Positions 6,881 through 61,339 of a stretch of 64,000 nt of DNA are shown here, piece after piece; position 1 is the first letter of the stretch; every line of letters starts with the position of its first letter. The notes under the pieces are model-generated. The model saw only the letters and a program-made list of their open reading frames with translations. It searched no databases and was not told where the DNA came from. The DNA lies in assembly GCA_002269645.1 (NCBI GenBank), contig NIVC01002045.1, forward strand, positions 1 through 64,000. The letters are read 5' to 3'. A program made the position numbers and the translations under genes. The stretch is from Macrostomum lignano (Eukaryota).

Positions 6881-9800
6881 ATGAAGCTGAGGGAGCTGTG
6901 GACGCTGCTTTTTGTGCTGCAGTTGCTGCCACAAGCGCTAACGCAGACTGTGCACGAGTCCAACTCCACCGACTTGCTGTTTGCCAAAATCTTCGACATT
7001 CGCTACTCCATGGTCAATCCGCCCAGAGTGAATGGGACATTCAATGTCACATTTGACATGGCCATAGCCCAGCTGCTGGAGCTCGTGAGTTCACCGCATC
7101 TTATTTCATAATTACAAGCAATAACCTACCTTGCAACCAACAACAGGTTAAAGTTACCAATGAAATACGAGTATAATTAGTTGGATTAGTCAGATTAGTC
7201 AGACTACTCAAGTAGAATGACGGGAAAACACGATTCTTGAGAATATTTAGGTGGCAGATTTGACCGAAAAAATACATTACAGCGATAGGAGGTTTTCATT
7301 TTTTTCAGCACAGAAATTGTTATTGCTTTTGATTGGAGGCTCAGTACTCAAGTAGTCCTTGCATCCTTTATATAGACTACTAGCAAAGTTTCAGATAAAT
7401 TTAAACTAATTCTAGCGTTTCTAAACATACACTTTCATTCTTTTATTCTTACCTTATTGAACAAATAATTTCAGAATGAAATCAAGCAAACCATCTCAAT
7501 GCTTACGTGGAGAAGAATGGTAAATAGATGAACTGATTACAGATGCTTGTTCATTTTCTAAAATGCAACTGACAAGTAAATACAATAGAAAGCTCTTGAA
7601 TTTTTCAGACCTGGTACGACACCAGACTGTCCTGGCGAAATCGAGTCTTCAACGGCAACCTGAGCTTCAACTCTGTCCAGTCAATCAAAATTCCAAATAG
7701 TCAGATCTGGAAGCCGGATTTGGTCGTGTACAATGAGTACGCTGGTTGATTGCCCTTTTCATTGCTTACTTAATCATTATTACTCTTAGAACCTGGTTCT
7801 GATATAATCGTCTATCGTCTAGCATTCCATCAGTCATATCGACTGTCGAGTAAGAACTGATTTTTTCGCTACTGAGGGCCCAGGATTTCAAGTTTCAAAC
7901 GATTGTTAAGGTCCAGAGCTTAGCGATAGACGAAATCGGGATTCGTCACTTATCAATTGTATTTCTGGGTTGACTCTAAACCTGAAGTTTTATGTATCTA
8001 TGCATCATACTTGACTCTGTAAGTGGAAAAACGCGTCACCAATCAACCCGACCTCTGCAGCGTTCGAGAAACAGAGCTCGACTGGTCCTTCTACTACGCC
8101 ACAGTTCGGTCCGACGGCTTTGTTCGACTAAACACGCCGCAGCTGATGAAGATGTCCTGCGCCATCAATGTCGAATACTTTCCGTACGATAAGCAGTCGT
8201 GCAGGATGAAGATTGGCAGCTGGACAATGGACGGCATCGAGCTGAACTTGCTGAACATCAGCTCCCATGCGGATCTGTCATCGTTGGAGGAAGACAATGA
8301 GTACTGCGTGATCGGGGCGCCTCTGAAGCGAAACGAGATCAAATACGCGTGCTGTAGTGCACCCTACCCCGACATTACGTACAGAATTTTGCTGCAGGTA
8401 ACTGATTACGCTAATAATAGATGCTGCTTGCCAACTGACAGCTATGGGTTGGGGCTTTTGAATATATATTGGTATTCCGATGGTGTTCCGATGGTGTACC
8501 GATGGTGTAACGATGGTGTGCCTATAGTGTTCCGATGGTGTACCGATGGTGTACCGATGGTGTACCGATGGTGTACCGATGGTGTACCGATGGTGTTCCG
8601 ATGGTATTCCGATGGTATTCCGATGGTGTTCCGATGGTGTACCGATGGTGTACCGATGGTGTGCCCATAGTGTTCCGATGGTGTGCCCATAGTGTTCCGA
8701 TGGTGTACCGATGGTGTACCGATGGTGTGCCCATAGTGTTCCGATGGTGTAACGATGGTGTACCGATGGTGTGCCCATAGTGTTCCGATGGTGTACTGAT
8801 AGTGTTCCGATGGTGTACCGATGGTGTACCGATGGTGTACCGATGGTGTACCGATGGTGTACCGATGAAATACTGATGGTGTACCGATGGTGTACCGCCA
8901 GGACCAAATTTTGCACATGACTGGACAGATTCATTGTGCCTTTGCCCTGGTTGGGAATGACAAAGCAGCACCAGGTTAAATAGCTCGTAGTAACTCATTC
9001 AAAGCATTGATCGTAAGCATACTTACGCAGATCATGCTCAACGTACTCTAAACAAATAGTTTCAGTCTAAACACTTCCATAGCGCATCATTCATGAATTA
9101 AGGTCATACTCATTCTAACTCTACTTTGTCCATCCTTCCCTGCTCTCCTGACAACGGGGTCCGGTTTACATGGTAATCAATTTATTCTACATGACGGAAA
9201 AGTTGGTTTTCCTGGATCGCGTGTGTCAGGCTGCACTCCGAGAACAGTCACTTAACTAGAATTCGCCGCGCAGCTGTGGTTGCATAGGAATGGAATTGAG
9301 CCAGAGAGAAGCACTAGGGGAGCGGATGAATGGCAGACGGACGAACTTCCTGCTCACGGCTCTCCCTTAGCAACACTGATCCATAATTTCCCGAGCACTC
9401 TGTTACCATGGCTGCCTATTGGCACTTGAGTTTGACCCGGAAGGATATAAACGATAGCCGCGAATAAAAGCTGTGCCGGCATTGAGGTTTGCTGCTACGC
9501 CCGCAAGCTGAAACAATTGCAAGCTGGCCGATTTATTTGGCTGCACAGAGGATATGCCTAGCAGTCCGGGAAAGACCAAAGTCGTTTGATTTCTATTCTG
9601 CAGGCTTTCCGTCAACCAAGGGGCAGGCCAATTTACTGGGGGGACTTAATTAACGCTCAAAGCAAGGAGAAACCAAGAATGACAGTGAATAGAAGTGGAA
9701 GCTGGAGGAGAACAAATGTCTTGGTTAAAATATGTTCTTGAAGATGTAGCATACTGAGAAGCCGAAAGAGCTGGAAGATAAAGGCTGTTCTATAAAAGCG

Positions 9801-11984
9801 CCCAAGCAATTGTAGGCTGGTAATACATAATTAATTAATGCCTCTGGGAACATCATTGAGCAAATTAGACGCCCACTGATGGTCCAGAGAGCCAAGCTCT
9901 CTGGCAGTTGCAACGAGACAGACTTTTTCTGTGCGGTCTAGTGCCTACGCAAACATAGGCTCCAGTGAGGTACTTTTCAGTCAAACAGATGAGTAACTGC
10001 AATATTTGATGTGTCAGTGACTGCAATTTAGTTATTGCGCGTATTCTGCCATATTAGCCGTATATGGAATTAGATACATTTCCCTAAGTGCGAGCTGGTA
10101 TGATTAAAACCTTGGAATAATTGAAGTATTCGTCAAGCGCGTCGAAGCACAGAAGTGCATTCGTTGAAACTTGACGATACATTAAAATCTTTCGGGTTTT
10201 TCCCCACAAACCGTTTCAGCGCAAGCCGCTGTACTACGAGATCAACCTCATCATGCCCTGCATCGCCATCCTCATTGTGGCCCTGTTCGGCTTCCGACTG
10301 CCGCCCGAGTCCGGCGAGCGGATCTCCTTGTGCGTCACGGTGCTGCTGGCGCTCAGCGTATTTCTGCAGCTGGCCAGCGAGCACACGCCGACTCAGAGCG
10401 ACGTTGTGCCGCTCATCTGTGAGTTTCTGTCGTGAACGTGGCGAAGGGAATGATGAGGCAAGCTCCGTGTCTCGAACTCCTAAGTTATCCTACCGCTGCC
10501 ACACCAACATACTTGTGCAAGATGCAGATACGGTAGCTCAAGCTGCTCAGCAGTAACCCCCGTTGCCTCTACTGCCTGTGCTAATTAGAGCTGGGATGGT
10601 ACAAGTTCTGTACTTGGGGTTTTATAAAGTACGATCGGCTGAAATGGCTAGCAGACCAGGCAGAAGTCATTTGGCTGCACTTCAAGGCGGGTCACATCGG
10701 ACGCAATTGTAATTTGTAATTTATAGTATACGTGTGGATTCGGGATTAAAACAAACAACTAGTGGAAAGTAGTTGAAGCAAATGAAGATGAAGTCAATTC
10801 GGTGTGAGCAGCAATTCGAAGTCGGCGTCATCCCTCACCGTGACTTAAAAGTATCCATTTGCCCTCGACGTCCGTCCAACGTCGGGTACGTTTCGTACGT
10901 CGGCCCTCTTACGTCGGGTCGGGTAAATCAAAGTCCACATTTGATTCAAGGATAGGCAGATGATCAAAGCTTTGCTATCTAACCAATCAACTATTAGCAG
11001 ACGCGTCGGTGCAGGGAGGTAAAAACCGAAACAAAAACCAAAACCAAAACCAGCAAGCCAAAGGTCTTACTTTGAATAACCAATTATGAAGCATGCTCCC
11101 AATCTCGGGTGGCTTAATTTTTTTACTCGGAAAAGTTAAAAGCAATACTACCATAGGCTGCATTGACTCATTCAATTCTATACTAAAAAATATTTATTTT
11201 TCAGCTCGCTACTTCATGGCCGCCATCGGAATGTCCTCAATGTGCGTGCTGGGCAGCATCTTGGTCCTGCTGCTGCACTTCAACGGCAAGCAGGCCAGAC
11301 CGATGGGCTCCAGAACTGAGCTGTTCTTCACTCTGCTGTGCCGCCTCATCTGCTACCCGGGCTTCGAGGAATCTGGCGCCTGCCGGGGCGGCAACCGCAG
11401 CGATAGAGTTCGCCCCGATGTCAGCAGAAAACTAAATGCAACTGTGAAGCACTGGGTTAGTTGTCAGGGAGTTAATGGGGTTTCCTAAAAAGCCTTCATA
11501 GCCTCCATGCTACCCACCAGCCTTCCCCATGTGAATCCGACAGGCCAACCCGAGCAAAAATAGCAGCGGACGAAGCACCGGCAGTCGCTCGCCTCAAAGT
11601 TCCACCACAGCCATCAACAATGACATGGAGGTCGAGGAAGTTGATATAGCTCAATACAGAGTTCGACCTGCTCCTACAGTCCAGGCCAAGGTGCCACCGA
11701 CGCTGCCTCCACCTCAGCAGCTGCCAGAGTGGGCCGCTGATGCTCTGGATCGGGTTGATGCCACATTATTTGACATTCGCTTAGCTCTGGCTCGGTCGCA
11801 GGACTCAAAACGACGTGAAAGACGCTGGGAGGACGCCGCCCAGGTCACGGACCGGCTGCTATTCTACATAGCCATCACCGGCTTCATCGGACTCAGCGTC
11901 GCGGTCTTCATGGTGCGGCCCAGCGAAGCCATCAGCGCCGCCGCCAACTGCAAGCAGCTGCGCGCCGCTACGATGGGCACCTGA
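6881..11984 (+). CDS. Nicotinic acetylcholine receptor-like alpha subunit, copy A (534 aa predicted, 7 exons, apparently intact)
   Basis: Exons 6881-7084, 7475-7519, 7609-7736, 8061-8397, 10220-10418, 11205-11455, 11544-11984, all GT-AG and phase-compatible. Signal peptide, WKPDLVVYN (loop A), Cys-loop CAINVEYFPYDKQSC, GSWTMDG (loop B), YACCSAPYPD (loop C with vicinal Cys), M1-M2 [29 protein letters not shown]3, and M4 [11 protein letters not shown]. Confidence 0.93.
8470..8896. repeat. Minisatellite of 11-bp units (GATGGTGTACC) with GATGGTGTGCCCATAGTGTTCC variants, intron 4 of copy A
   Basis: Directly visible tandem array. It explains the repetitive ORFs at 8278-8998. Confidence 0.95.
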
Positions 11985-13859: not shown

Positions 13860-14029
13860 TATTGTGCTGGTGTGGCCTCGGCAAGCATTCATGCCATAAA
13901 TATAAATACACAATCTTACCTTATCCGAAAGCTCCCATGAAAAAAAATTTCTGCTTTACTTTCAATAACAAATTTGAGTTAAATATTACTTTTGAGTCTA
14001 AAGATGAGTTTCCCTACTCATCCTTTCAG

Positions 14030-14325
14030 CGGTAGAGAAACAGAGCTCGAATTTTCCTTCAATACGCCACAGTTCGGTCCGACGGCTCCGTGCAGCTGAA
14101 CACGCCCTATCTGTTGAAGACTTCGTGCAGCTGAACACGCCCCATCTGTTGAAGACTTCCGACTGCTCCGACAGTCAAGGCCAAAATGATGCCCCAACAG
14201 CTGCCGCAATGGGCTGCTGATGCTTTAGAATCAATCGAGTTGATGCAACCAAGAAGTCCAAGCTGCGCGAGCGTCTCTGGGAGGACGCCGCTCAGATTTC
14301 GGGACCGGCTGATGTTCAACAAGTG
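14030..14325 (+). pseudogene. Collapsed fifth receptor paralogue: exon-4 start fused to mid exon-7
   Basis: TTTCAG acceptor followed by ...AGAAACAGAGCTCGA...TACGCCACAGTTCGGTCCGACGGC, which matches copy A exon 4. A 35-bp tandem duplication lies at 14089-14158. Then ...CAGCTGCCGCAATGGGCTGCTGATGCT...TGGGAGGACGCCGCTCAG...GACCGGCTGATGTTC matches exon 7. Confidence 0.85.
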
Positions 14326-14490
14326 TAGATTGGCTGGCCAATCGCTGTTAGCGGGGCCGGGGGCTTGTCGTCGCCCTGTTTGGGGGTGCTTGGTCCGGGG
14401 GTGGGTGCGCCGCCCCCGGGGCGGGGGTGGGTGTCTGTGGGGCCTTTTTAGCCCCGTGCGTTGTGCTCAACTCAACTTACTCTGGGTACT

Positions 14491-15483
14491 ATGAGTTTGC
14501 GTAGGATGACTGTAAATCAGCTACGTGAAGAATTGAGTGATAGGGGCCTGAGCACGCACGGCTACAAGAAAGACCTGGTCAGCAGACTCTCCACTGCGAT
14601 GAACCAGAGCGAAGCAGCTAGTCGGCGGGAACAAGCGGCGTCAAACTCCGCGGAGACCGACAGCGAAGGTCGGCGGCAGCAGCAGCAACAACGGCTGGAG
14701 GCAGGGGAGGCGCTGGACCTAGCAGAGCTCCGGCGGAAGATAGCTAGCCTGGAATCGGAGACGGCAGCAATGCGCCAGCAGCTGGAAGGCCGATTTAGAC
14801 CAGGTGAGGTGGACCAACAGCTTCTTAATGAGCCCTCTGATTTTAGTAGCGACATGAATATCCCGAGTATGCTCAGAGGTCCCGGGTTCGAGACCAGGCT
14901 CGAGCCCTCAGTAGCTCAACTAGGGCTACGGGCGGCACCACTCGTCGTTGCGGATTTCTGCGGTTGCGACCCTCGGACGGCGCCGGCGAGTCGTAGGGAA
15001 AAGGTGCTGCATCCAACCGCCAATCAGCCTAAACCCGAATCGCTGGGAATCGGTCAGTGGATAGTCGGCAACGCGCGCATCCTCGACGCCCTGATCTCTA
15101 GGGGACAGCTCGACCTGGAAGGCGTTCGGCAGTACTTGCAGTACAATGTGCAGATCGGTGAGCTGGTCGAGGCAGGTTACGACACCACCAGGATCATGCG
15201 GTTCGACGACGCATTTAGAAGAGAGCAGCAGGCGGGCATGCAAGACTGGGCGCGACCGAGTTTCTCGCTGGTGGCACGGCACCTCATCGCCCCGCAGCAG
15301 ACTCCACAACATGCCCGTTCTCGCATGGACAGGAAGATTCCGGTGATCCAAGGTGCGCCCGTGTGCCTCAAGTTCAATACCCGTGGTGGCTGCAAGTTCC
15401 AGAATTGCAAGTACACTCATGCGTGCCGGGTCTGCTTGCGCTCGGACCACGGCGAGACGCAACACGCGGCAAAAAACGAATAG
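14491..15483 (+). CDS. Ngaro-like ORF1 (Gag-like, 330 aa): N-terminal SAP domain, coiled coil, C-terminal CCCH/CCHH-type zinc finger
   Basis: LRRMTVNQLREELSDRGLSTHGYKKDLVSRL fits the SAP consensus. C-terminal CLKFNTRGGCKFQNCKYTHACRVCLRSDHGETQH. The frame is uninterrupted. Confidence 0.8.
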   Translation: MSLRRMTVNQLREELSDRGLSTHGYKKDLVSRLSTAMNQSEAASRREQAASNSAETDSEGRRQQQQQRLEAGEALDLAELRRKIASLESETAAMRQQLEGRFRPGEVDQQLLNEPSDFSSDMNIPSMLRGPGFETRLEPSVAQLGLRAAPLVVADFCGCDPRTAPASRREKVLHPTANQPKPESLGIGQWIVGNARILDALISRGQLDLEGVRQYLQYNVQIGELVEAGYDTTRIMRFDDAFRREQQAGMQDWARPSFSLVARHLIAPQQTPQHARSRMDRKIPVIQGAPVCLKFNTRGGCKFQNCKYTHACRVCLRSDHGETQHAAKNE

Positions 15484-17051
15484 CCGCGGCTCCAGTGGCC
15501 CCGGCAAGCTGGCAGCCGCAAATTATAATCCCAAGTTTTTACTCCATTCGCGACATCAATTTCAATCCGAGTGGCTCCCTTGACGCAAAAGACTGGGCGA
15601 AGGAGCTGGACGGCGACTCCGACGGGCCTTTTTTAATTGACGGAGTCCAAAACGGCTTCGCGCTCACTACTGAAACAGATTTTAAGCCTTCCGAAGTTGA
15701 GAACTACTCGTCCGCCATTGAGTACAAGACGCTGGTTGAAGAGCAATTGCAGCGTGAGATCGCCAGCGGGCGGTATGTGTCAGTCAGCCGACGTCCGTGC
15801 AAGATCTCCGCGCTTGGAGCCATCCCGAAAGAGGACGGTGGAGTCCGTATCATCCACGACTGCAGTCGTCCGGAAGGCTGTGCGGTCAACGACCACTTTA
15901 TCGCAGACCACAAGATTAAGTTTGAAACGGTTAGCGGCCTCTGCTCACAACTCAAGCCCGGTGACTTCACGGCCAAGATCGATCTCAAGGAGGCGTATCG
16001 CTCAGTAGGTGTTCATCCTTCTTCTCTCGACGCTCTGGGCATCAAATGGCAATTTAGCGGTGACAGCGAGCCTACCTACCTGGTCGACACCCGGCTGAGC
16101 TTCGGCGCTGCGGCCTCGGTGTACCATTTCAACAGGCTGTCTAAGGCGGTGGTGCGCATGATGCAACGGCGCGGGTTCACCTGCGTTGGCTACCTCGACG
16201 ACTTCGCTGTGGCCGGGAGCACCTACGAGTCCTGTGTCGAGGCTTACGAGAGCTTGAGGAGCCTGGCGACGAGCCTCGGTTTCACCATCAACGAAAAGAA
16301 GTCTAGCGGGCCGTCGCGGCACACGGTTTTCCTGGGCATCCTGATTGACACAGAGTCGGGGATGCTGAGCATCCCACCGGCCAAGCTCAGTGCACTCGAA
16401 GACGCACTTGGGAGCTGCTTGCATCGACGCGGTGCCATCAGCAAGCGCGACCTTCAGCGGATCTGCGGCAAGCTGTCCTGGGTGAGCAGCGTGACCAGGA
16501 AAGGCTGAGCTTCCATCCACCCTCTACTGATGCTGGCGAGCCGGGCGACTAGACCTGGGGACAAATTGCGGCTGACCCCGCACCTCACTGAGCTGCTGCA
16601 CTGGTGGAGGAGAAGCCTTCAGTCCGTTGGCTGCGCGCCCATCTGGCCTCGCTACGCGCGAAGGATCGTCATCGAGACTGACGCCTGCAACTCGGGTGGT
16701 GCCTGCATTGTTCGGGAGGCCAATAAATCCGACTGGCTCTACATCAACTGGAAGAACGACGCTGGTGGCCGTTTTGCTTCGGCTCACATCAACGTTAAGG
16801 AGACCATCACGCCTGTCCTCAGCATCCTCGCGGCCCCGGGCCGCTTCGACGGTGCGGACATCGTCGTGTACAGCGACAGCTCGGCGGCTGTCGGTGCGCT
16901 GAACAAGCTCAGCTCGCCATGTAACGACGTCAACCGGCTCCTGCACACGCTGTCGCTTGCCTGCGACGCATGGGGTCTGCGGCTGCGGGCCTTTCACGTT
17001 CCAGGCGCCTTCCAGGTCCTGGCGGACCCGGCCTCTCGCCTTGCTTCTTGA
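15471..17051 (+). pseudogene. Ngaro-like pol (RT-RNase H) with a single in-frame stop
   Basis: ORFs 15363-16508 and 16530-17051 are in the same frame, separated by TGA at 16506-16508 in the context G-*-ASI. This is consistent with a CGA(Arg) to TGA change. Confidence 0.85.
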
Positions 17052-18165
17052 GTACCGCATGACCGGCAGCTGGGAGAGTCCCGCATGACCGGCATCTGTG
17101 AAAGCACAAGCGAGGCCAATATTATTCAACACATCGCAACTTAGAATAGTTGCGTTCAAACGTATTAGAACTATTTTCTGTGAGTAGTATGCATAGTAGA
17201 ATCATTTTCGTTTTTAACCTCTTTTTATAAGTTGATGAACATATTTTTTATCCTAAGTGTGATAAAATAAATTGCGATACTGCAAACAGTTTCGGCCCTA
17301 AGCAAACCTACTGGATTCAGAGATTTTAAAACTATTGTCCCTATTTGCAAATCGCCGTCGATATGTGGTCTGCTGAATTGTAGACCACACATACCTCCGC
17401 TTTCCACATTGTTTTCTGAAACTGCGTCAATTAATTTGCTCCATTTCACAATGACAATACTCAAAACTGACTTCGCGTACTTGAGAAAAAGCCAAAAATA
17501 AAAAAATGACAATTATTACAAATGACTGAAAAATAATACTAATTCGCATAAGAGGCTCACACTACACTTAACGTTCCTCTTCTGGAGCTCAGAAGCTCAG
17601 ATAAATAACGCGTACGTGTAATGCTTTATTTCTATTTTCATCGGAAGCAATTCTGCAAATGCTTGCGTTGGTTCATTAGCGATTAAAAAAGCAGTACTGT
17701 AATCTCCTTGCTTGTACTTGGTGCATCTTTGGGTTTGGACTGACTGTTTCTGCTTCTTCTAAGAACAATTCTCAGTCTGAATGCTGCCCTCAACACTACG
17801 AGCGTATTGAGATGATGCTTCAGATGCCGAGACGCTGAGACAATGCAGCATATTTCATGTTCTGAGCTGCCTTTCTTTTATTGATTCCGCAGCGCCGGAG
17901 CTGCCCGAGCAGCTCCTCTCTGCGTGTCCAAATGCATCTTTCCGATGCCAGCTTCATCACTTGGAGCACCCGCAGAGCCAGAATTCAAGAGACTGTTCAG
18001 TTGAGTTGTAGAAAGGACTTCTCTCATTGGCCCTCACTCTCCGGGCTTTGGACGCTGGCAGTCTGCGTCTTACCATGCAGAGTGGGGCGTTGGCTCCTTG
18101 GGGTCTCAAAATTCTCCGGCCAAACTGCTCAGTGCTTCACTCCCTTCCCTACCACACCTGCTACC

Positions 18166-20040: not shown

Positions 20041-20559
20041 CTGCTACCCATCTTTTCTCCGACATGAACCATGCGAATCTGGATTGGGAGGCTTTCTAAA
20101 ACAGAAACGACTAAGCCCTGCTCCTACTTCCCAAGCCCCGGCTGTCCACACAACCCACCGCATTCCACTCGCTCCGCCCTGTCTTGAGAAGCGGCCACAA
20201 TATACAGCCAGAATTTGTCTGCAAGCAGAACCCCGTGGATGTTTTTGACGAGACGTTGGATTGACTGTGTATTTGGCTGCGATATGCATGTATTTGTTAT
20301 TGTAGGAGGTCGAAAGCATTAGGCCTAAAGAATCTAAGCGGGGCTCCAGGGGCGATAGCAAGCAGAGGACAAGCTGCAGGTTAAGACATAGGCAATTCGC
20401 AATCATTACGAATAATGCTTGACTAATGGGACTTGCTAGTCATACTATTTCATGCCTCCTCTTAAATAGAGCCGGGAATAAATAAGTGTGAACAGGGGTG
20501 CGAAACGAACAATGGTGGGAGCAACCGGGTGACAAGGAAGTTGTGCAGAGGGAAGTTAA

Positions 20560-21302: not shown

Positions 21303-21315
21303 CTGATTGGCTCGC
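21303..21315 (+). promoter_or_regulatory. Inverted CCAAT box upstream of copy B
   Basis: CTGATTGGCTCGC, 178 bp before the ATG, is identical to the copy A motif. Confidence 0.5.
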
Positions 21316-33064: not shown

Positions 33065-33141
33065 GCATACGAAGGCGTATTCAGCATGCCAGTGAAGTAT
33101 GAGACAGACTAGGCCTACGAGCTAAGGTCTGCGATGCTTCA
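33065..33141 (+). ncRNA. Candidate HDV-like self-cleaving ribozyme at the element 5' end
   Basis: Aligns without gaps to 52223-52147(-). Compensatory changes fall in the putative P1, P2 and P3. P4 (CAGAC/GUCUG) is followed by CGA. See findings. Confidence 0.55.
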
Positions 33142-49200: not shown

Positions 49201-52200
49201 CCGTTGGAGGCACTTTGCCTTGCGCCGGAGGGATCCGAGCGCCGGGTGCCACCAGGGGGCGGATTTCTTGCCTTTGTAGGCTTTAAGAGGACAGGAAGCC
49301 TCATGGGCTGTCAGGACGGTCTTGCTGAGCAAGTCTGCAAGGTCATCCACTTCCTGACAGGTGGTTGGAGCGACGGTAGTCAGCTGATCTGTCTGGCATT
49401 TCAGGGTTTCCGTGAAAGCCGTCCAGTCTGTGTTCCGGAAGTTCCTTTTCCACAGAATGTGAGGCTTGGGGCAAGAGGATTGCAAATGAAAACGAACGAA
49501 GCGATGGTCAGACAGAGACTCCTCTTCGTCCCACACCTCCTAGTCCTTGACTAAAGGAGCCAAGCCATGGGAGACGAGGGTAACGTCGAGGGCCTCCGTC
49601 CATCGCCCGTTGTCAAAGGTGGGGGTTCCACCAATGTTGCAAAACTCAGTGTTGGTGGTGCAGATGTAAGCAAGGAGTTCCTCGCCTCTGCTATTGGAAG
49701 TATTACTGCCCCAGTGGGTGTGGTGAGCGTTGATGTCGCCCGCCACCAGCAGCTCGAACCTACGGTTAGAGCAGTAGTCCACGAGGGAGGTGAGGTTGGG
49801 TGGAACCGCGGGGCCATCGCCAGGGATATAAATCGAGGCGATTATGACCGTGCGGTTGGTGATAATGTGGTTGGACTGAATGACACAGAGATCTCTGTCA
49901 GAGAGGTCCGGTCTGTGCCAAGCTTTGAGATGGGTAGACACGAACATGGCTGCTCTGGGGTTTTGAGGGTCCTGAAAACAGTCAAAACCAGCAGGAATAT
50001 TCGGAATCTTACCTTTCTTTGTCCAGGGCTCATGGAGTAGGATGATGCCCGGTTTCGCAAAGTTTGCCACCCGCATCAGGTTGGTCGAGGCCGCGATGCA
50101 GTGGTGTAGGTTTAGCTGCAGGATGTCCACTCCGGGGATTCCACGAGTGGTTCGCGCAGCTTCTTGCCGGCTCAAGGCGAGTTGTGCAGGAGAGCTGCCT
50201 CTTCTGCCTCGCCGATAGCTTCAGACTCCAGCTCCATGGGCTCCTCCCGGATGGATCCATGGTCGAGGGCAATGTCGCTGCCTGGGCGGCATTCTCGCTC
50301 TCGGCCTGGTTTTCCGGGGGGGGGCGCAGTGGTGACACTGGGCTGGCGGTGGCTGCGGTTGGGGGCCTTGGCGGTGTCCAGCAGCTGCTTCGCGCGCTGA
50401 GTCAGACCAGAGCGGATAGTGTTCCGGGCGGGTTTCCGGCCCTTTCCACGTCCGCCTGTTGCTGCAGCTTTCGCGGCTTTCCCTCTGACGGGGTCCACGT
50501 CCTCGGAGGGGTCGTGACGGCCGGGAGCTTCTTTTCCTGGGCGTTTCCGCCCGGCAGAGCCCCCGACAGCCCGCTTACGCTTCTCCGGGGGCGGTGGGCG
50601 GGTGGCGTCAGACTCAAAGCTAAAGAGCTGAATCTGCAACAGCCCGACAGAGATGATGGACATGTCCGGGTAGCGGAGCATCCAGCTATCCGACAGTCCA
50701 AGAATAGCCGTGAAACCGTCTCCGCCCGGCTTGGAGATGGTCTCGTGAACTACGACACCGTTTGCCGGTAGCTCCGGGTTGGAAGCCACTAGCAGGTGAC
50801 GCAGCTCGTCGGCCTTGGTGATGCAGCTGCGAGCCGGGATCCAGGCACGGTGCCGGTGTGTCCGGGGTCGCTCGTCCTCCCTGTAGATGAACAGGTTCTC
50901 CAGCTCCGTACCCCAGTCGAAGGTTTTCAGCAGCTCGAGGAGCTGCTGTCCTGACTGGCTGTCGGCGGGCTGGATATGGAGGGCTTGGTCCTCGACTTTC
51001 GTCTTTTGGACTCGAATAGTAGTGCCGCTCAAGGCCATCTTGACCAGGTGGGAGTCCAACCTGCGCCAGATAAGGTCGAGCTGTTCGGCCGTAAGAGGCG
51101 TCTCCTGGCCTTGGATAACCAGGGCCGGCTGCCTCTTGGCCATAGCCGCGTAGGTTCGCTTTGGCTTTGTGGTTTGGCCAGCGCCCCCCGCTTTGGATCC
51201 CTCCACAGCCGTGGGAGCTACCACACGGGCAGAGGTCCGGTCACGGGAGGGGCCAGCCGCACCAGGAGCTTCGGCGGCACCTGACGCATCAGACCGGCGC
51301 GCGGGGTCCACCCCCTTGTCGGATGTCGGCTCCTCCGCGGGGTTCGCAGAGTTACCGGCACCCTCCTCAGAGGTGGCCGGAGGGGCGGCTTTCGCATTCC
51401 TCCGTTCCTCCGCTTTGCGCTGGAGAAAGGCTTTGTAGCGAGCAATGCTACGGGCCTTCTTTTTCGAAATCTGAGGTCCGCTGTCTTGTCCAGCCACTCC
51501 GGTATTATCCTGAGCGGCGGCAGCGGCAGATTGAGAGGCACCGGGGGTTCCGGTGTTGCGAATGTCCGGCTGGGCCGCGGTGCCAACCTCGGTTGGTGCT
51601 CGAGCAGCCTCGGACGTGTCGGAGGTAAATGAATACTCCATGAGTCGCTGAAAGGCGAGTGGGGACTAGAGGTGAGAAGCCGCTGGGCCGTAACCCCAAA
51701 CCCAACAACCAGGCCAAGAGGTAGCGACCGGGGGGTGGCTTAAGCCCGTACCGGCCCGACCGCTAGCAACCGAGAAACTCCCCGGCTAAGAGCCCGGCTT
51801 GGAGAAACCAGAGGCCGAACCAAAGGACCATCAGCGCGGTACTACACTGGGCCCTTGGGGGAAGCAGGAGGACTGCCTCCGGAGCCTGCGGACTGGCCGC
51901 ATACCCTGTTAAGGTCAGAGGGTGATACCTGTTCCTCAGAGCCGTGGCCAGAGGTACCTGATACGCACAGGTTCACTTCCGGGCCAAAAGGCCACGGATG
52001 GGTTGCCGCCGCCGGAGCCCAGTCAGTCCAGCAGCCCTAGGGCTGCCTTGAACACATGCGGGGCGCGAACCCCTGGGTCGGCTTGCGAGTCAGCTTGGAG
52101 AGAGTTCTCCTGCCATTCCTGCACCAGAATAGAGGGGGTGCAGGTGTGTAGGATCGCAGACCTTAGCTCGTAGGCCTAGTCTGTCTCATGCTACACAGGC

Positions 52201-55200
52201 ATGCTATACCCGCCATTGCATGCTGGAGGCCAGCACAAAAGCTGCAGTTGCTGACCGACACAGAAGCAGAAAATGTATCCCTAATAGAAATTAAATACTT
52301 TTAGGCTGATTGTTGCGATAATTTTAGCTCAGGTGTCTACAGACTGGCGCTCATAAATCATATTGAAAATATTCTGCCACTTTGAATCTACTACCAGCGT
52401 AATAAATACTTTGCTCTACTCTGCTAATCTCATCACAGGTATTAACTGGGCATCCTCTGCTCCGCTAATTGCCTGTGGTCTTCACTTGGCATCTTTTCAA
52501 CCGGTATTATTCGAGGGGTTTCCAATAATAGCAGTTAAAATTCGATGTACCGACTGAACGCGAAGGCAGAATCTAATGTAACAGGCATCACTGAATTTAT
52601 AAACATTCCACAGTTCTAATAGACGTTTATTTCTGTAAAAGTTATGGCTAAAGCTGCAACAAGGGGTAAAGGGTAAAGTTACGCCAAGCCGAGGCCATAC
52701 AGTCTGCCATGCAGAATCGCCGTTAACTGATGACTTTTGGACAAAGTGACCCCTTAACTAAACTAATTCACCTCCTGGAATCAGTGTCCACTGCAGATTC
52801 AACTATTTGGCGGGCGAAAACAACTCTAATAGCATAAACCGATGCTCAATTGCTTGTATATATTTTAGCTCGCACCATCGCAGTGACAGCGTGCCAGTGA
52901 GATAGAAAGAGCGTGCATAGCTTCTTAGCTTCTCCCATTGCCTTTGGAAGCACACAAAGCGGCGATGACCTTTTTGCAGAATGCACCAAATATCAAAAGA
53001 ACAGCGTACGCTCAAACTCAAGGGCTCGACTTAACGCAACTCCACCCCTTAAACTCCTAAAATATCTTGGCCAAGAACTTCCCAGCAGAAACTCCTCTAT
53101 CCACTCACTCTCGCAACTGCAAAGCGTCTCTACGTCCATGGCCTAAGGATAACCGACCACAGAACCTTCTGAGTCTCCCGAACAGCTACCACCTGACTTT
53201 GGTTAGTTACCTGTTGATAAATTCTTACGTAACAAGCGAGGAGCAGCATGGAATTGGGGGAAGCAAACGCAAAGAAAGTTGGTGGTAAGCCGTCTGCAGA
53301 GGCAGAACAGCAGTCAGATGCTGCTAAGATACGCTGAGAGGCTTCAACTAGTGCAAGAACAAGTGGGCCGAGCAGCATGCTTGTAGGCAATCTAAGAGTT
53401 GCGAACGAGTGGTAGCAGAGGCAGAAATGCGAGACTCTGAGACAGTGCTACAACAATGCGTTTAGGGAGATCAGAGAGAGGGGGAGAGCTGCGGGGCATT
53501 CTGACCACGCAGGCTATTTTGTGAATCAGGAAGTTCCACAAGTAGCCACTGCAGTCACTGATTCAGCTGGGTAGGCCAAGGATAATCCTCAGCTAAGCAG
53601 TAAAGCATGATTACAGCTTTGCCTTTTTGTCAGGCATTTACGACGTATAACCTGAATGGATTCCTGAATACATTCCTGTACTTTTGAGCATCTGCATTTC
53701 TTGATGGAGATAGATGCGTATGTGCTCAAAGCCGATGGTTTTCAATGAAGGTTTTCAATATGAGCCGGCTAGCAGAGCATTTTATATGTGATAATCAATT
53801 CTGACGTCTGCATGAAATCCTAGTTTTTACTCAGCAAGACTTTAGTTTATTTCTGAAGGAGAGGGAGAGAGGGAGAGAGAATAAAATAGCTCATTTCATA
53901 AACTCTGTTGCATTAAATTCTGATTTTCAATTTAGTCGGTACACCGATTTTTATCTCAACTTTTGGACACCTCTCGTAGTCATGTGCTTCATTATAATGT
54001 TTTAAACGATTTTACATCGTTTTATATTTTCCCGACGGTAGCCGCAAGTGTCAAATGCGTCATTGTCACACAACCGGCGAGAGGCATTACTGCCCATTCG
54101 ACCATAGACAACTCTATAGTTGAGAAAAACAAACTTGTGAGAAAAATAACCTCAAAAGCTGATGTTTATACTCAGTATAGTATGCTAGGTACTGGTATAT
54201 ATATTTTGGTAAACGAACGTATGAAACATTTATCAGCGCTACTAGACTTAAAAAACGGATTCAAGGTTGTTTCGTCAAATGCCGTTTCGTCTAAGAGATT
54301 TTTTGGAGAGTCGTTTCGTCTAACGGAGATTTGAAGCAACTGGAAAGCAAGATAATGATTAATATGTGATGGAGAAGTAATTTTACAGACATCAGTGAGA
54401 TGTGGTGTGTACGCCATAACTTGAAAGCTGCATTTGTTTGTAAAAAATGTTTACAATTTGGCGTTCACTGCACGACACGTTTAAAAGTACCTAGTGGGTT
54501 ACGACACTAAGAGAAGAAGACGTCACTACATTCAATGAAAAATTGGTCATTAAATCATGAAGATAATACAGCGAGTGTCAGACGACTCCACTGAGCAGGC
54601 ACATACGAGCGTAAGCGCGGGGATACGTACGCAGTCACACACACAGGCACACACAAGTGTGTACAGCCGCTCCAACTTTAATTATCGTTAGAAATGTACA
54701 CCTACTTCACTGTTCCTTGGGGGTTGGCGCTCAAGGGCGTTGATTGCACGAGCAGACTCAAGCAGAGATTCCAGAATCGAGCCTGGGCCGCTGGCACATA
54801 CTGTAAGAACACTGCGCTAGAACATTGTACGCTGCAGCCCCCTTCATCCTGCAAACAGCTCAATTTCAACAGCTGCATTGATTGATTTGCAAACAATCAA
54901 CCCCTTCCAGCGCAAGCCGCTGTACTACGAGATCAACCTCATCATGCCCTGCATCGCCATCCTCACTGTGGCCCTGTTCGGCTTCCGACTGCCGCCCGAG
55001 TCCGGCGAGCGGATCTCCCTGTCCGTCACGGTGCTGCTGGCGCTCAGCGTGTTTCTTCAGCTGTCCAGCGAGCACACGCCGACTCAGAGCGACGTTGTGC
55101 CGCTCATGTGTGAGTCTGCGAGTCATGCGCTACCCCAGCTTTGTAGCTAATTGTTTAGCCTGTAAAACTTATTTAATTGTTTGCAGATATTTCTGCACTT

Positions 55201-57721
55201 GTTAAGCACCAGTTCCCTCACACTGAGAAAACACAGGGCTGAAAATGCTCTGGCAGGGCAAGATAAAACCGCACGCTAAAAGTACACAGACAGGTCATGG
55301 CTACAGCCGGTCAGGCGAGAGCAGTGCGACTCATACAACAACAAACAACAACAAAGGACGACAACCCAAGGCCGAAGCCAGAGGGGCTGCCGTCAAAAGG
55401 CACGCGCAAGAGCAGAGTGGCGCAGAATTGTCAGTCCACGAGGGTCAGAGATCTCAGCGTCAGTCAATAGCAGTTCAGGATAGCGTAGCGCCCTCGCCTG
55501 ACCACGCCGCCGGGGCCCCTGCAGGGAAAGCAGCAGCACGTCCTGCAGTGGCTCGGGGCAGCGCTGCTCCGCACGGATGACGTGGCCAGCCAGCTGCAGG
55601 CGCCGGATGCGCAGCAGCTGACTTGGCCGGCAGAGCTGGGCCCGGCGATAGAGCTCATCGTTGCTGGTGTTGGTGACGGCAGTCGGCGAATAGTGGACGC
55701 CGAAGGCGGCTCGCAGGAGTCCGGCGTGGGCGGCATCGAGTTGCTTCTCCTGTGTGCCGTTCAGAGTCCACGTTTGAGCGTTGTAGAGAAAGACGGTCTC
55801 TATGACGGCTTGAAACAACCGCCCTCTCAGCCGATCCGGCAGCGTGGGGCACTGCAGGACAGTCCGCAGGGTGCGAAAGGCTGCCCAGGCAAGCGCCCTG
55901 CGTCGCGCCATGTCGTCCAGGATGTCGGGCACTTGACCGCCGAGATAGATGAAGGTCTCGCAGCGCGGCAGCAATGCCGCTTGCCCATTTACGTTGTGGC
56001 AGAAGATCTCGCCGTTGAGGTCATTTGGGACGGTCAGCACCATTGTTTTCTTGGTGTTCACGGACAGCCCGACCATTGCCGCCGCCGCAGTCAGCTTCTC
56101 CAGCAGATGCTGAGCACCTTCGATTGAGCTGGACAGCAGCGCCAGGTCGTCCGCGTACGCCAGGACAGAGAGTCGTCTTTCGACTCTCTGTCCTGAGAGT
56201 GCGTTTCTGCTCTGTCGCAGGACAAGCAGCCGACACCCCGACTCATACAATAGGACACACTGTTGCTAAGGCCACATGGGTTTGTAGCTAACAATGGTTT
56301 TAGCCTAGTGGATGGAGCGTCGGACTCCCGGCTGAAAAGTCAGGGGTTCCATTCTCGACCCACTCGGAACAATTTGAGCGAAGACACTTAACTCTGCATT
56401 GCTTCAGTTCACCTAACTGTAAAATGGATTTCAGCATTAGCTGGGGGTCATTGAGGATGTGTGGTAACCCCCCAGTCCTTGGACTGAATAGTTGTACGCA
56501 GTCTTAAGATGCGCCGCGCAATAGCTGCGGCTGAGCTGTTTGGTTGCACATCAGACAGCGGCCCTGACTTTCTTCTAATCGTCAGACATGTGCATTGTGA
56601 ACTCTCTTAGCCTTGAATGTTGGCCCTCATTTGGGGTGTGAATTGAACAACACCCCCGGCCAATTTCCGTGAGGTGAGCAAGCTCTAAAATATTGTAACC
56701 AGTGTCGTGGGCCCGAGAGCCAGCGTTTTTGAGCGTACCACGGAGCTGTTAAGCTTATACTTATACTCTAGTCCCTGAAACTGAATACAGTGGGCTTAGT
56801 AGACATACACTAGAGATACTACACGTACTACACATACGCGTAGACATACACATACGCTTTTCAGCCCGCTACTTCATGGTCGCCATCGGCATGTCCTCGT
56901 TGTGCGTTCTGGGCAGCATCCTGGTGCTGCTGCTGCAATCCAACGGCAAGCAGGCCAAGCGAATGGGCCACCGAACTGAGCTGTTCTTCACTCTGCTGTG
57001 CCGCCTCATCTGCTATCCGGGCTTCCAGGAAGCTGGAGCGAACGCCAGCGGCTGCAGAGGTGACGGAGGCACCCACGGAGGCAACAGGCACCAGAATCGC
57101 GTCAACAGGCGCTCGGTAGGCTGCCGATTTCTCAGAGTGGTTTAATGCAATGAATCAAATCTCAGTGTCTTTAAAATAAACAGTGGTTTTCGTTGTATTA
57201 CGAGCGTAACATGCACATAAGAAGGAGCCATTTGCTAGAAAAACGTCACGCATAATTCTTTCATTTTGCAGATTAGTCCGAGCGAAAGCAGCAACAGCAG
57301 AAGCAACAGCAGAGGCAAAAACATCATTTCGCCGACAGCCTCGTCTACCATCGTGTCCAGCAGCATGGATGTGGAGGAGATTGACATTGATGAACTGCGC
57401 GTCCGAGCTGAGCGCAGTTCGACTGCTGATGTGCCGCCGCCACCGTCTCCCCAGCTGCCGCCGCCGCAGTGGGCGGCTGATGCTCTGAACCGAGTCAGCT
57501 CAACCCTGACGGAGATTCGCCTGGCCATGGCCCAGTCGGAGGACTCCAAGCGATGGGAGCGACGTTGGGAGGACGCCGCCCAGGTCACGGACAGGCTGAT
57601 GTTCTACATCTCCATAATAGGCTTCATCGGACTCATCCTGACCGTCTTGATAGTCCGACCCAGCGAAGCCATCAGCGCCGCCACCGACTGCAAGCAGCTG
57701 CGCGCCGCCTCGATGACCTGA
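40264..57721 (+). CDS. Nicotinic acetylcholine receptor-like alpha subunit, copy C (541 aa predicted, exons intact, introns expanded by TEs)
   Basis: Exons 40264-40479, 43509-43553, 43625-43752, 43903-44239, 54911-55109, 56865-57115, 57272-57721. Loop C is [10 protein letters not shown]. Confidence 0.92.
40659..40696 (-). ncRNA. Minimal type I hammerhead ribozyme motif (inverted pLTR copy)
   Basis: The minus strand reads ACC-CTGACGA-C-GGCCC-TAGT-GGGTG-GAA-ACGCTT-T-GGT. The core is intact and the stem III palindrome is mutated. Confidence 0.6.
41774..43024 (+). mobile_element. hAT DNA transposon, 5' portion only, nested in the Penelope pLTR
   Basis: TIR start CAGTGTTGGGCAAAGTT with subterminal CCGGCACTT/CCGGTACTT repeats. 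BED finger (VCQLCLP...[14 protein letters not shown]) in 42101-42514. Dimerisation region ([17 protein letters not shown]...IPSRRTL) in 42688-43068. Right end missing. Confidence 0.85.
43128..43165 (+). ncRNA. Minimal type I hammerhead ribozyme motif (sense pLTR copy)
   Basis: ACC-GTGACGA-C-GACCC-CAGT-GGGTT-GAA-ACGCGT-T-GGT. The palindromic ACGCGT is intact, but core C3 is replaced by G. Confidence 0.55.
45110..45539. repeat. Satellite: 12 full units plus 1 partial of 35-36 bp (TTTGTCTATGGTTGCCATCGAATATATAAACTAAT)
   Basis: Directly counted. Preceded by an inverted copy of the unit's first 14 bp (CAACCATAGACAAA). Confidence 0.95.
46447..50175 (-). pseudogene. ORF2 (APE-RT-RNase H-CCHC), interrupted
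   Basis: Segments 49540-50175, 47749-49536, 47612-47932 and 46447-47601. In-frame TAG at 49540-49542 (probably W), a frameshift or deletion near 47915, and a further stop near 47612. Confidence 0.9.
50172..51641 (-). CDS. ORF1 of the LOA/R1-like element (489 aa, uninterrupted)
   Basis: Long ORF directly upstream of the endonuclease. Homologous to the broken ORF1 at 33546-34986 ([10 protein letters not shown] vs SYASKVKQP; HRAWIPA vs HRIWVPA). Confidence 0.85.
   Translation of the reverse strand: MEYSFTSDTSEAARAPTEVGTAAQPDIRNTGTPGASQSAAAAAQDNTGVAGQDSGPQISKKKARSIARYKAFLQRKAEERRNAKAAPPATSEEGAGNSANPAEEPTSDKGVDPARRSDASGAAEAPGAAGPSRDRTSARVVAPTAVEGSKAGGAGQTTKPKRTYAAMAKRQPALVIQGQETPLTAEQLDLIWRRLDSHLVKMALSGTTIRVQKTKVEDQALHIQPADSQSGQQLLELLKTFDWGTELENLFIYREDERPRTHRHRAWIPARSCITKADELRHLLVASNPELPANGVVVHETISKPGGDGFTAILGLSDSWMLRYPDMSIISVGLLQIQLFSFESDATRPPPPEKRKRAVGGSAGRKRPGKEAPGRHDPSEDVDPVRGKAAKAAATGGRGKGRKPARNTIRSGLTQRAKQLLDTAKAPNRSHRQPSVTTAPPPGKPGRERECRPGSDIALDHGSIREEPMELESEAIGEAEEAALLHNSP
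52147..52223 (-). ncRNA. Candidate HDV-like ribozyme, second variant
   Basis: The first nucleotide (G at 52223) abuts the TSD. 37 nt are identical to 33099-33135. Confidence 0.55.
55339..56238 (-). mobile_element. 5'-truncated RTE-clade non-LTR retrotransposon in intron 5 of copy C
   Basis: ORF 55393-56250 ([10 protein letters not shown]...FIYLGG...[14 protein letters not shown]). (CAA)n tail. 12-bp TSD CGACTCATACAA at 55327-55338 and 56239-56250. The empty site is in copy B near 26866. Confidence 0.92.
56296..56570 (+). mobile_element. tRNA-derived SINE with CORE/Meta-like domain, intron 5 of copy C
   Basis: A box TAGCCTAGTGG and B-box-like GGTTCCATTC, followed by the central domain and tail seen in the other two copies. 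Confidence 0.75.
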
Positions 57722-59802
57722 CAGAGGTATCCGACCGAGTGCTCCGCCAGATTTAAAGTAGAAATGCCACAAAAACTGTTTGCAGTCAGTTTTTTGAACG
57801 CTCGAATGGACCTGAGCAGGCTCAAAATTGCACCCAATATTATACTATTCCCGTTGTAAAATAGGAAGCCAATTTGCTCAGAAGTACCAGTTATCTGAGT
57901 TCGACTCCCGGCTTCATATTACTTATTGTCAGATTTATCCATATAATCTGACAAAAGTCGTATCATTTCCTATTTACTCCATGTATTTTGCGTTTTGTTG
58001 CCCCAATTGGGCCGTTTTACTTTCCTATTGTGTGCACGATCTATTTAGAGCGTATAGCAATTGTACGATCGATAATTTAGGCCTTTCCGTGCGCGTGGCG
58101 CACGAAGAGGTCCAGTTTATCACTTTAAATATATAGTCTGGCCCTCGCCTTGGTTTATTACCCTTTCTATTCACTTTCTCACCACCGACTTATACGACCG
58201 CGTGTTTCTAGCTTCAAGTGTTAGTTCAGTTAATTATTTGTCCCACCAGCAATCGAACACTTATAATACTTTGGGGCTTATGCATGAAGTTGGTTTTGGA
58301 CTTGTTGTTTAGTCCACACCCATTAGGGCCAACCCTCAGTGTGTGTGTGTGCGCGCGTGTGTGCACATGTTCCAGCTCAGGGCTTAGTGGAATGGACACA
58401 ACCTTCTCAACGGCTGCGGGTGGACTTGTCGTGTTGATTTCCGGGATAAATGGTATGTCTCAGTACAGACATAGGATGGTTTTCCTTTGTCGTGTACTTT
58501 TGCATGCCTGCTCCGTTTGAGTTCAGCAAATTTGAGCATAATCTGCTACTAGAGAGTACTCTTAGAATTCGCTGTTCGCGAAAGCTGCATATTTTATAGA
58601 ACTGACCGGCATTCTGCTTTGCTATTCTCACACTGAGTTTATTCTTGTCCATTGTATTTCAGCAACACAACTCTATATTCGTGACTTCATATTCTACTAC
58701 TATGAGTAACACTTTGAGTGTGTGGTAAATTTTGTTATAATTTGTGCGTTCAAATTTAACAGAAATTTTTGTTGTGAGTAGTATGCATAGTAGTATCTTT
58801 TTTCGTTTTAGAAGCTGTTTTGATAAAGTCGATAACATTTTTTATTCTACGAAAGTTTACCCGATAGCATTCCTCTGCGCCCTACTTGAAAAAATGACAA
58901 GTCCAAAAGCAGGTAAGTTGAAGTTTTTTATGATGAAAGATATGTTTGTGTAATGCATGTATCTTACAATTACAATGCAGGTTGCTTCTTATTCATCTGT
59001 TATTATTCTGCAAATAATTGCATTGCTTCATTATTTTGTTAAAAAGCAATACTTGTGATTTCCTTGTTTGTACTTTCTGTACCTCTGATTTACCTATGAC
59101 CGACTGTTTGTTTTTCCTTTCAAGGATAATTACCAGTCTGAATGCAGTCTGAATGCAAATAGAGATATTGCTGTGGCACCCTGAGACAAGTCTGCGTCTT
59201 TTATATTTGGAGAGCTGCTTTTGTTTTACTGATTCCGCAGTGCTGGAGCTACTCTCCTCTCTGTGTGTTCAAGTACATCTTTCCAATGCCAGCTTCATCA
59301 GTTGGTGCATCCGCATTGCCAAGAGTTCAAGAGACACTCGCTCACGGAGTTGAGTTGTAGAAAGAGCTTTCAGTACCGGTATTTGGCCTTCATTCTCTGG
59401 TCTGGGGACGCAGGCAGTTGGCAGCTTGCCATACAGAGTGGGGGCTCCTTGGGGTCTCAAAAGTTTGCTTCACTCCCTTCCCTAACCCTACCAACCCCGC
59501 CACCCAGCTTTTCTCCGCCATGAACCATTGGCATATGCGTAGACGGCTACGCCCCTCCCCTACTATCCAAGCCCCGGCTGTCGACACCAGTACCCCGCAT
59601 TCCCCTTGCTCCACCCTGTCCCAGTGTCCCAGCTACAATAAAGGCAGAGTTTGTCTCCAAACGGAACCCCCACAAGTCCAAAAAGACGCTTTGGATATTT
59701 TTGGCAATTCCTACACTTGCTGGAAGGCAGAGTAAAAAAACAAAATTGAACAAAACGGCTAGAGCAATAATACTCGTAAGCTCAAGCTTGAAATGCTGGT
59801 CG

Positions 59803-59812
59803 CTGATTGGCT
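59803..59812 (+). promoter_or_regulatory. Inverted CCAAT box upstream of copy D
   Basis: CTGATTGGCT, 178 bp before the ATG. Confidence 0.5.
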
Positions 59813-59980
59813 GATTGTCTCGCATTGCTGCTGTTTGAAACGCTGCTAAAACTCAAATAGCTGCATCCTGCCAGAAGCGGATAACACAGGAGGAGCCACA
59901 GCCTCCCTAAGCCAAAAGAGAAAAAAATCTTTTGAGACGAGAGGGTTAATTTTTCAACTTTTTTTCAACTACAAGCGGGC

Positions 59981-61339
59981 ATGCGGTTGAATACTGCGCT
60001 GTTCTCCGCATTGCTGAGCACCCTGCTGCTGCAGCTGCTGCCACCAGCGTTGATGCAGAGCGTGCACGAATCCAGCTCCGCCGACTTGCTGTTCTCCAAG
60101 ATTTACGACGCTCATCTCTCGATGATTCCTCCGCCTAAAGTGAACGGTACATTTAATGTCACCTTTGACATGGCCATTGCGCAGCTACTGGAGCTCGTGA
60201 GTTCACTGACTCTGATTGCTATTCTGCCGCTTCGCTATACGACCGCTACTTTATACGTTGATTCGCTCAATTAGCGAAAAAATGATACTAATACTAAACA
60301 AAAAATAACTAATAATAAATATTAGTCGACGAATTGTTTCTTTGTAAATTTTTCCTCTGTTTCAAGCCGAAAGAAGTAAATGTTCTTCTCTTTGATGGGA
60401 TCGATACTGCAGGCACGTGATATTTTCAAATCGAGTGCAAGATCGGGTGCGCCTCCACTGCGGGTTGAAAGCGTCCCAGCAGTTTTACAGAATAAGAAAG
60501 GATTGGCAGGCGAGAGTAATGCAAATAAGATCAGAGGTTTATCCTGTTGTTTAACCGGTAATGCTCTAGAGTTTAATGAACTCATGCTATCATTAGTTAC
60601 AGACAACTTTATTACAGAGTTAATTAGTTACAGACAGCATTGCTGCAACGTTATCCTTCACTTGCTTCAGGACGAACTCAAGCAGACAGTCTCCATGCTC
60701 ACCTGGAGGAGAATGGTGAGTGTATTGACTGCCTTAAACACCTGTTGCCTGATTACGGCAGTACTCAAGTTGCTTTGATTTTGCAGTCCTGGTACGACAC
60801 CAGACTATCATGGCGGGGTCGCGTCTTCGATGGCAACCTGAGCTTCAACTCTATCGGCAGCATCAAGATTCCAAACAGCCAGATCTGGAAGCCGGACTTG
60901 GTCGTGTACAATGAGTGAGTCGAAATGTTTGTTTGATCTTCCATTTAGAATTTAGATGTCAATCAAAAATAATGAAATCACCAAACCGTCCACCCTCCGC
61001 AGTGTGAGGAAAACGGAGCTCGACTGGTCCCTCTACTACGCGTCAATTCAATCAGACGGCCTCGTTCGACTCAACACCCCCCAGCTGATGAAGCTGTCCT
61101 GCCCAATCAATGTCCAACTGTTTCCTTATGATAAGCAGGTGTGCAGGATGAAGATCGGCAGCTGGACAATGGATGGTTTTGAGCTCAACTTGCTCAACGC
61201 GAGCACGCACGCTGACCTGTCCTCGATGGCGGAGGACAACGAGTTCTGCCTCGTCAAGGCGCCGCTGGAGCGAAACGTGATAAAGTACGCGTGCTGCGAT
61301 GCGCCTTACCCGGACATTACGTACAGCATTTTGCTGCAG
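59981..61339 (+). CDS. Nicotinic acetylcholine receptor-like alpha subunit, copy D, exons 1-4 only (the rest is presumably beyond the window)
   Basis: Exons 59981-60196, 60671-60715, 60787-60914, 61003-61339. Exon 4 differs from copy B by two silent changes that I could find. Confidence 0.9.

Follow-up and report, generated by a model that had tools for sequence, protein, structure and literature searches.

The first 64,000 nucleotides of contig NIVC01002045.1 of Macrostomum lignano (assembly GCA_002269645.1, positions 1 to 64,000 of the forward strand; hereafter the window) very probably carry a genuine tandem cluster of paralogous genes for alpha-type subunits of the nicotinic kind, whose pentameric channels are predicted to be gated by acetylcholine and to select for cations. 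Self-comparison of the window gave co-linear similarity blocks that belong to four receptor-like copies, A, B, C and D, arranged head-to-tail on the same strand, and gene models were obtained by translating these blocks and reading off the exon boundaries (Table 1). All introns of the four genes are of the GT-AG type, the reading frames contain no internal stop and 25 of the 25 exons are open. The internal exons measure 45, 128, 337, 199 and 251 bp in every copy (in D, as far as it is present). Gene A has an exon 1 of 204 bp and an exon 7 of 441 bp, whereas exon 1 is 216 bp long in the other three copies and exon 7 is 450 bp long in B and C. A first-pass annotation of this DNA had described four same-strand copies of alpha-type nicotinic acetylcholine receptor-like genes with identical internal exon sizes, accompanied by a relic. 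The gene models reproduce this layout between 6881, the ATG of gene A, and 61339, the final base of exon 4 of gene D; they agree with Pfam and solved-structure matches on the nature of the array, and the relic was recovered as well.

Nothing receptor-like occurs upstream of A, so the array has its 5' edge inside the window; at the 3' side it is open. In gene D, homology to intron 4 of the copies B and C extends to about 62605, and a tblastn search found no exons 5 to 7 of this gene after 61339 within the window, which contains no N gaps. When the A and B proteins were compared by tblastn with the whole window, the only further copy recovered was the relic. It shares 80.6% identity (blastn) with exon 4 of gene A (8058-8160), and its two tblastn matches, at 14057-14131 (residues 138-160) and at 14165-14370 (residues 431-506), are in different frames. 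A processed pseudogene is ruled out as its origin by the joining of non-adjacent exon pieces, the frameshifts and the local duplication.

The proteins encoded by A and B match Neur_chan_LBD (PF02931; E-values of 3.6e-43 and 2.6e-44) and Neur_chan_memb (PF02932; E-values of 5.1e-26 and 3.2e-26), in each case over nearly the full length of the Pfam profile. The best matches of B among solved structures are human nicotinic alpha-6, alpha-4 and alpha-7 (E-values of about 1e-59), and lower-scoring ones include muscle-type and beta subunits, DEG-3/DES-2 and the betaine receptor ACR-23. Binding-site residues were placed by alignment with human alpha-4 and alpha-6 and with 13 other receptors; in a 15-sequence alignment, the aromatic residues and cysteines described below do not vary. 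The vicinal cysteines appear as KYACC in all four copies, opposite YECC and YNCC of human alpha-4 and alpha-6. The aromatic box is complete, with the loop A Tyr (VVYND), the loop B Trp (GSWTMDG), both loop C Tyr (KYACC.APYPD) and the loop D Trp (MLTW), the latter encoded by the 45-bp exon 2. Hence, the alignment upholds the vicinal cysteines and the five aromatic positions that had been recognized before. The Cys-loop (C-x13-C with FPYD) is encoded by exon 4 and exists in one version in gene A, CAINVEYFPYDKQSC, and in another version shared by B, C and D; its two cysteines, F-P and D are invariant across the 15 aligned sequences. In the established pore numbering, the second transmembrane segment (TM2), which aligns with that of alpha-4, follows the pattern of cationic nicotinic receptors, with Glu at both -1' and 20', the gate Leu at 9' and Val at 13'; it has no Pro-Ala-Arg insertion and shows Gln at 16'. 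Since the aromatic box and the vicinal cysteines are intact, acetylcholine or a similar quaternary amine would be expected as ligand and not a new ligand class. Acetylcholine (or a choline/betaine-like amine) is the default predicted ligand, and the channels are predicted to pass cations.

The genes also have features of their own. Loop B contains Met where most relatives have Tyr (WTMDG for WTYDG), a position at which alpha-9/10-like relatives also show His, Phe or Gln, and the N-terminal Arg-Pro is replaced by Pro-Pro. Both substitutions had been pointed out in the first-pass annotation and are found in the alignment. Six residues, NLSFNS, are inserted in the beta2-beta3 loop and include an N-glycosylation site. 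In the GEW motif, taken here to be loop F, Trp is replaced by Phe or Tyr with an extra Cys alongside, and the extended extracellular C-terminal tail carries a conserved Cys. Loop E is presumably polar (L109 to S, Q117 to R and L119 to N, in human alpha-7 numbering transferred by hand). The two extra cysteines just mentioned, at residues 208/212 (exon 4; EFCLV/EYCVI) and 524/532 (exon 7 tail; DCKQ/NCKQ), are kept in A, B and C and are absent from the 13 aligned relatives. A disulfide between the Cys of the C-terminal tail and that of the GEW motif is conceivable.

Relatives of these genes are distant. The best matches of full-length B in a word-indexed search of 5.8 billion proteins are 30-39% identical. 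When the exon 4 translation of B was searched exhaustively against 1.84 billion cluster representatives, 3439 relatives were retrieved, a single one of them close and none above 50% identity save this one, a mis-annotated fragment of gene A (P0026). This UniParc-only entry (UPI0007A292C2, 174 aa) is identical to exon 4 of gene A read past its splice donor into an intronic 11-bp repeat (window 8023-8670), so that it goes back to an earlier annotation of this species in which the gene was mis-modelled. The next-best exon 4 matches (44-49%) come from Owenia fusiformis, Acropora and Lingula and are 27-34% identical at full length; among relatives that bear a name, those of the alpha-7, alpha-9/10 and ACR-16-like kinds are nearest. 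No relative of B was found in JGI metagenome contigs, and exact look-ups of four ORFs of the window matched no contig on record. A phylogeny with lophotrochozoan receptors, which the first-pass annotation had named as a check, was obtained by neighbour-joining (81 sequences, 100 bootstraps). It places A, B and C beside sequences of Owenia (P0027) and Lingula (P0033, P0038 and P0049), within a clade of annelid, brachiopod, bivalve and gastropod sequences whose named members are all lophotrochozoan (oysters, Mytilus, Pinctada, Mactra, Tegillarca, Plakobranchus and Ridgeia). Support for this placement is weak, as only 53 of the 100 bootstraps put Owenia in the sister group, and the crustacean sequences P0042 and P0106 are equally near by raw distance. 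The affinity of the genes to alpha-9/10-like receptors of annelids and brachiopods is accordingly a weak one. With no relative above 50% identity, A to D appear to form a lineage-restricted family.

The ratio of non-synonymous to synonymous substitution rates (dN/dS) lies between 0.15 and 0.31 in six of six pairwise comparisons. Between A and B, C or D, dS is 0.59-0.83 and dN/dS 0.17-0.31; between B and C, these values are 0.064 and 0.28, and exon dS among B, C and D is 0.04-0.07. Since ratios of 0.15-0.31 persist between A and B or C at a dS of about 0.6, purifying selection must have been sustained. The array genes look functional by these measures and by their intact ORFs, and are presumed to be expressed. 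Codon bias is strong in A, B and C (GC content of 56-58% for the coding sequences and of 73-79% at third codon positions, with non-transposon introns at about 40%); it may add some synonymous constraint, lowering dS somewhat, which matters for any dating of the duplications.

At the DNA level, exons of B, C and D are 95.8-100% identical to one another, and exon 4 of A is 80.7% identical to that of B, close to the near-identity and the 20% divergence reported in the first-pass annotation. Upstream and intron identity among B, C and D is a mosaic ranging from 66 to 98%, with many segments at 66-85%; segments of low identity (72-85%) sometimes lie less than 100 bp from segments of 92-98%. A and B share 98.0% identity in exon 5, which encodes the first transmembrane segment and TM2 and thereby the pore, and their dS is 0.039 there, whereas it reaches 0.47-0.91 in the other measurable exons (exon 2 being saturated; Fisher p = 1.3e-10 for the contrast). 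Likewise, A is 96-98% identical to B and C in exon 5 and 68-86% identical in the remaining exons. The tract of high identity stops 6-13 bp from the exon edges. This pattern indicates that exon 5 was homogenised by an exon-limited gene conversion between the older paralogues A and B/C. Since exons are far more alike than introns and exon 5 is nearly identical, gene conversion is likely to make similarity overstate recency, and the duplications may be considerably older than exon similarity implies. Therefore, the recent lineage-specific expansion proposed at first is retained as regards restriction to the lineage, given that no relative exceeds 50% identity, and only in part as regards its recency, which gene conversion inflates. 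Furthermore, the spacer at 17151-18111, downstream of the relic and of a retroelement, is 70-80% identical to the C-D spacer (58745-59462), which suggests an ancestral duplication of a two-gene unit (relic and B corresponding to C and D).

Introns and spacers of the array have received various transposons and repeats (Table 1). Intron 1 measures 405 bp in B, 3029 bp in C and 474 bp in D, and intron 4 measures 3680 bp in B and 10671 bp in C; the extra sequence amounts to about 2.6 kb in intron 1 of C and about 1.7 kb in intron 6 of B. The long interspersed nuclear element (LINE) in gene C, which is I-like, has four long open reading frames (ORFs) encoding a 489-aa ORF1 protein, an endonuclease, a 595-aa reverse transcriptase and an RNase H, and is probably a young insertion. 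Its nearest database relatives are 26-37% identical, those with a name being all from insects, and more decayed LINE relatives with 65-71% identity lie between B and C (31868-39400). The reverse transcriptase of the retroelement that adjoins the relic (15363-16508) has relatives at 40-51% identity, the few named ones being from amphioxus, acorn worm and Macrostomum; insertion of this element may have accompanied the loss of the relic copy. Owing to the 11-bp repeat of gene A, long spurious ORFs appear on both strands, each time in more than one place of the reading-frame list. A 36-base pattern of the 18-bp satellite has no exact match in prokaryotic genome contigs. Upstream of the array, at 4087-5368 on the plus strand, three consecutive ORFs encode charged low-complexity sequences that may be either a host gene exon or transposon debris; the 197-aa ORF of this set has no Pfam match. 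A scan of the window against Rfam gave no match.

Table 1. Features of the receptor gene array and of its repeats in the 64,000-nucleotide window
Feature	Position	Strand	Description
Gene A	6881-11984	+	7 exons, 534 aa; complete; divergent older paralogue
Gene A exons	6881-7084, 7475-7519, 7609-7736, 8061-8397, 10220-10418, 11205-11455, 11544-11984	+	
Gene B	21481-29938	+	7 exons, 541 aa; complete
Gene B exons	21481-21696, 22102-22146, 22218-22345, 22434-22770, 26451-26649, 27469-27719, 29489-29938	+	
Gene C	40264-57721	+	7 exons, 541 aa; complete; introns 1 and 4 lengthened by transposon insertions
Gene C exons	40264-40479, 43509-43553, 43625-43752, 43903-44239, 54911-55109, 56865-57115, 57272-57721	+	
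Gene D	59981-61339	+	exons 1-4 only, each intact; the rest, if any, beyond the window
Gene D exons	59981-60196, 60671-60715, 60787-60914, 61003-61339	+	
Exon 4	A 8061-8397; B 22434-22770; C 43903-44239; D 61003-61339	+	Cys-loop, loop B and loop C
Putative exon 5 conversion tract	A 10207-10424; B 26438-26655; C 54898-55115	+	96.8% and 95.4% identity over 218 bp
Relic of a fifth copy	14027-14370	+	degenerate; 5' part of exon 4 with frameshifts and a partial duplication, next to pieces of exon 7
Retroelement	14461-17159		directly 3' of the relic; SAP-domain ORF, reverse transcriptase, further ORF
I-like LINE	46447-51641	-	in gene C intron 4 (10.7 kb); nearly intact
11-bp tandem repeat CCGATGGTGTA	8477-8897		in gene A intron 4; about 38 copies; absent from B, C and D
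18-bp satellite CAGAGACATCAGAGACAC	62851-64000		interrupts gene D intron 4 and reaches the window end; more than 64 copies, 95% matches
35-bp tandem repeat	45101-45539		in gene C intron 4, absent from B; 12.7 copies, 95% matches

Several observations weigh against a cluster of functional acetylcholine receptor genes. The donor of exon 6 and the acceptor of exon 7 lie in the unconserved cytoplasmic loop and were picked by phase and signal strength, which makes them the least certain junctions of the models, and gene D is incomplete within the window. No transcript or correctly annotated protein of any copy occurs among the 5.8 billion proteins, UPI0007A292C2 being the only trace. Moreover, residues adjacent to the pocket are unusual (loop B Met, Phe/Tyr and Cys in the GEW motif, a presumably polar loop E), and the ligand specificity could differ from acetylcholine on their account. 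Mis-joined haplotypes, or another false duplication by the assembler, are a highly improbable source of the copies. It is true that several gene segments show 92-97% identity among B, C and D, a range that alleles can reach in very heterozygous marine invertebrates. However, three similar copies together with A and the relic exceed what two haplotypes give, identity between these pairs falls to 66-85% in upstream and intron segments, and A stands at a dS of about 0.6-0.8 from the other copies. Copy-specific transposon insertions and intron lengths, the mosaic of 66-98% non-coding identity and the lack of gaps therefore make such an artefact very unlikely. A silent or decaying array, in which young copies look intact but are out of use, is a less remote explanation, which we nevertheless consider unlikely. 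The relic proves that copies die here, introns are accumulating transposons, and databases hold no matching transcript-derived or annotated protein but one mis-predicted fragment. This absence is at least as well explained by poor sampling of the species, as the transposons also lack close matches, and all the exons are open with canonical splice sites and dN/dS remains at 0.15-0.31 even between A and B or C at a dS of about 0.6.

The nature of the ligand and the composition of the pentamers call for separate consideration. That the receptors respond to something else than acetylcholine, for example to betaine, choline or an environmental amine, or that they serve as chemosensory or toxin-tolerant receptors, seems about as unlikely as a silent array. 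Nicotinic-type families gave rise to betaine receptors, and ACR-23 is among the structure matches; the family is restricted to its lineage, and the six-residue insertion between beta2 and beta3 adds to the unusual residues of loop B, of the GEW motif and, presumably, of loop E. Cephalopod chemotactile receptors offer a precedent, being a lineage-specific, locally duplicated lophotrochozoan offshoot of nicotinic receptors that is non-cholinergic and has lost the acetylcholine-binding residues. The present genes differ in that they retain all the canonical acetylcholine-binding residues, and this model does not fit them. Families that switched ligand class usually lost some of the aromatic-box or vicinal-cysteine residues, whereas the five aromatic residues and the vicinal cysteines are kept here under constraint across copies at a dS of about 0.6. 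Hence, the chemosensory or toxin-adapted function, rather than a synaptic one, put forward in the first-pass annotation finds no support here, the intact pocket pointing to an acetylcholine-like amine. A narrower variant, which we regard as improbable, is that of an orphan alpha-type clade whose pocket would have been re-tuned to a non-acetylcholine ligand through the loop B Met, the changes in the GEW motif, whose new Cys may bond to that of the tail, and a presumably polar loop E, the pore being held identical across old paralogues by exon-limited conversion. If true, different binding domains would have been bolted to one standard pore.

It is a substantial possibility, although one that we lean slightly against, that the subunits are obligate partners in heteromers and do not form homomers. 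Most alpha-type subunits need partners, the loop E positions are presumably polar, unlike those of alpha-7 (by manual mapping), and co-assembly would suit the coexistence of two types of paralogue, A and B, whose pore exon has been homogenised. By contrast, the nearest named relatives (alpha-7, alpha-9/10 and ACR-16-like receptors) belong to the group that holds the known homomer formers, and the loop D Trp is present. The first-pass annotation viewed each copy as potentially homomeric, a proposal whose support would end at the presence of these residues: the loop D Trp alone is not predictive, and loop E appears polar.

Returning to the tandem cluster of acetylcholine-gated channel genes, its enlargement would most likely have resulted from unequal crossing-over, the repeated unit comprising the gene and about 0.6-1 kb of upstream sequence. 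An older split would have separated A and the relic from the B/C/D type, and the younger copies B, C and D would have arisen subsequently. Transposons would have inserted later into introns and spacers. Recurrent short-tract gene conversion would keep the exons alike, most strikingly the pore exon, and purifying selection acts on all copies.

Like vertebrate alpha-7, alpha-9 and alpha-10 and nematode ACR-16, the genes of the array combine vicinal cysteines, a full aromatic box, a loop D Trp and a cationic pore motif. Intron positions of CHRNA7 at the 45-bp exon and before the third transmembrane segment presumably match those of the present genes. They differ from these receptors, with which they share 27-34% identity at full length, by the loop B Met, the Pro-Pro, the NLSFNS insertion, the extra Cys of the GEW motif and the long Cys-bearing C-terminal tail. 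Expansions of nicotinic receptor genes are documented in other invertebrates: bivalves possess 99-217 of these genes and annelids 52-129 (Jiao et al. 2019, PMC6896357). In oyster and pearl-oyster, more than half of them lie in tandem arrays of 2-12 genes, and mollusc arrays show same-strand members, stepwise lineage-specific tandem duplication, degenerate members and a high divergence from vertebrate subunits (PMC6896357). The array of M. lignano resembles those of molluscs and annelids by its same-strand local paralogues and its degenerate member. However, the expanded mollusc genes are mostly intron-poor retrogene derivatives (PMC6896357), whereas the complete copies described here keep six introns at conserved positions, including those around the ancient 45-bp exon, and the family has no orthologue above 50% identity in the sampled species. 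Since every complete copy has six introns, the array would derive from segmental tandem duplication only and not from retroposition.

The array can thus be viewed as one more case of the known local expansions of nicotinic receptors in invertebrates, in a lineage with very sparse coverage in public protein databases. Two of its features stand out, neither of which alters the current understanding of the receptor family. One is a family that has no relative above 50% identity among the sampled proteins and yet has a textbook acetylcholine site. The other, and the most noteworthy detail, is the pore exon, whose apparent homogenisation between older paralogues, elsewhere saturated at synonymous sites, would represent a clean natural case of exon-scale concerted evolution in channel genes.

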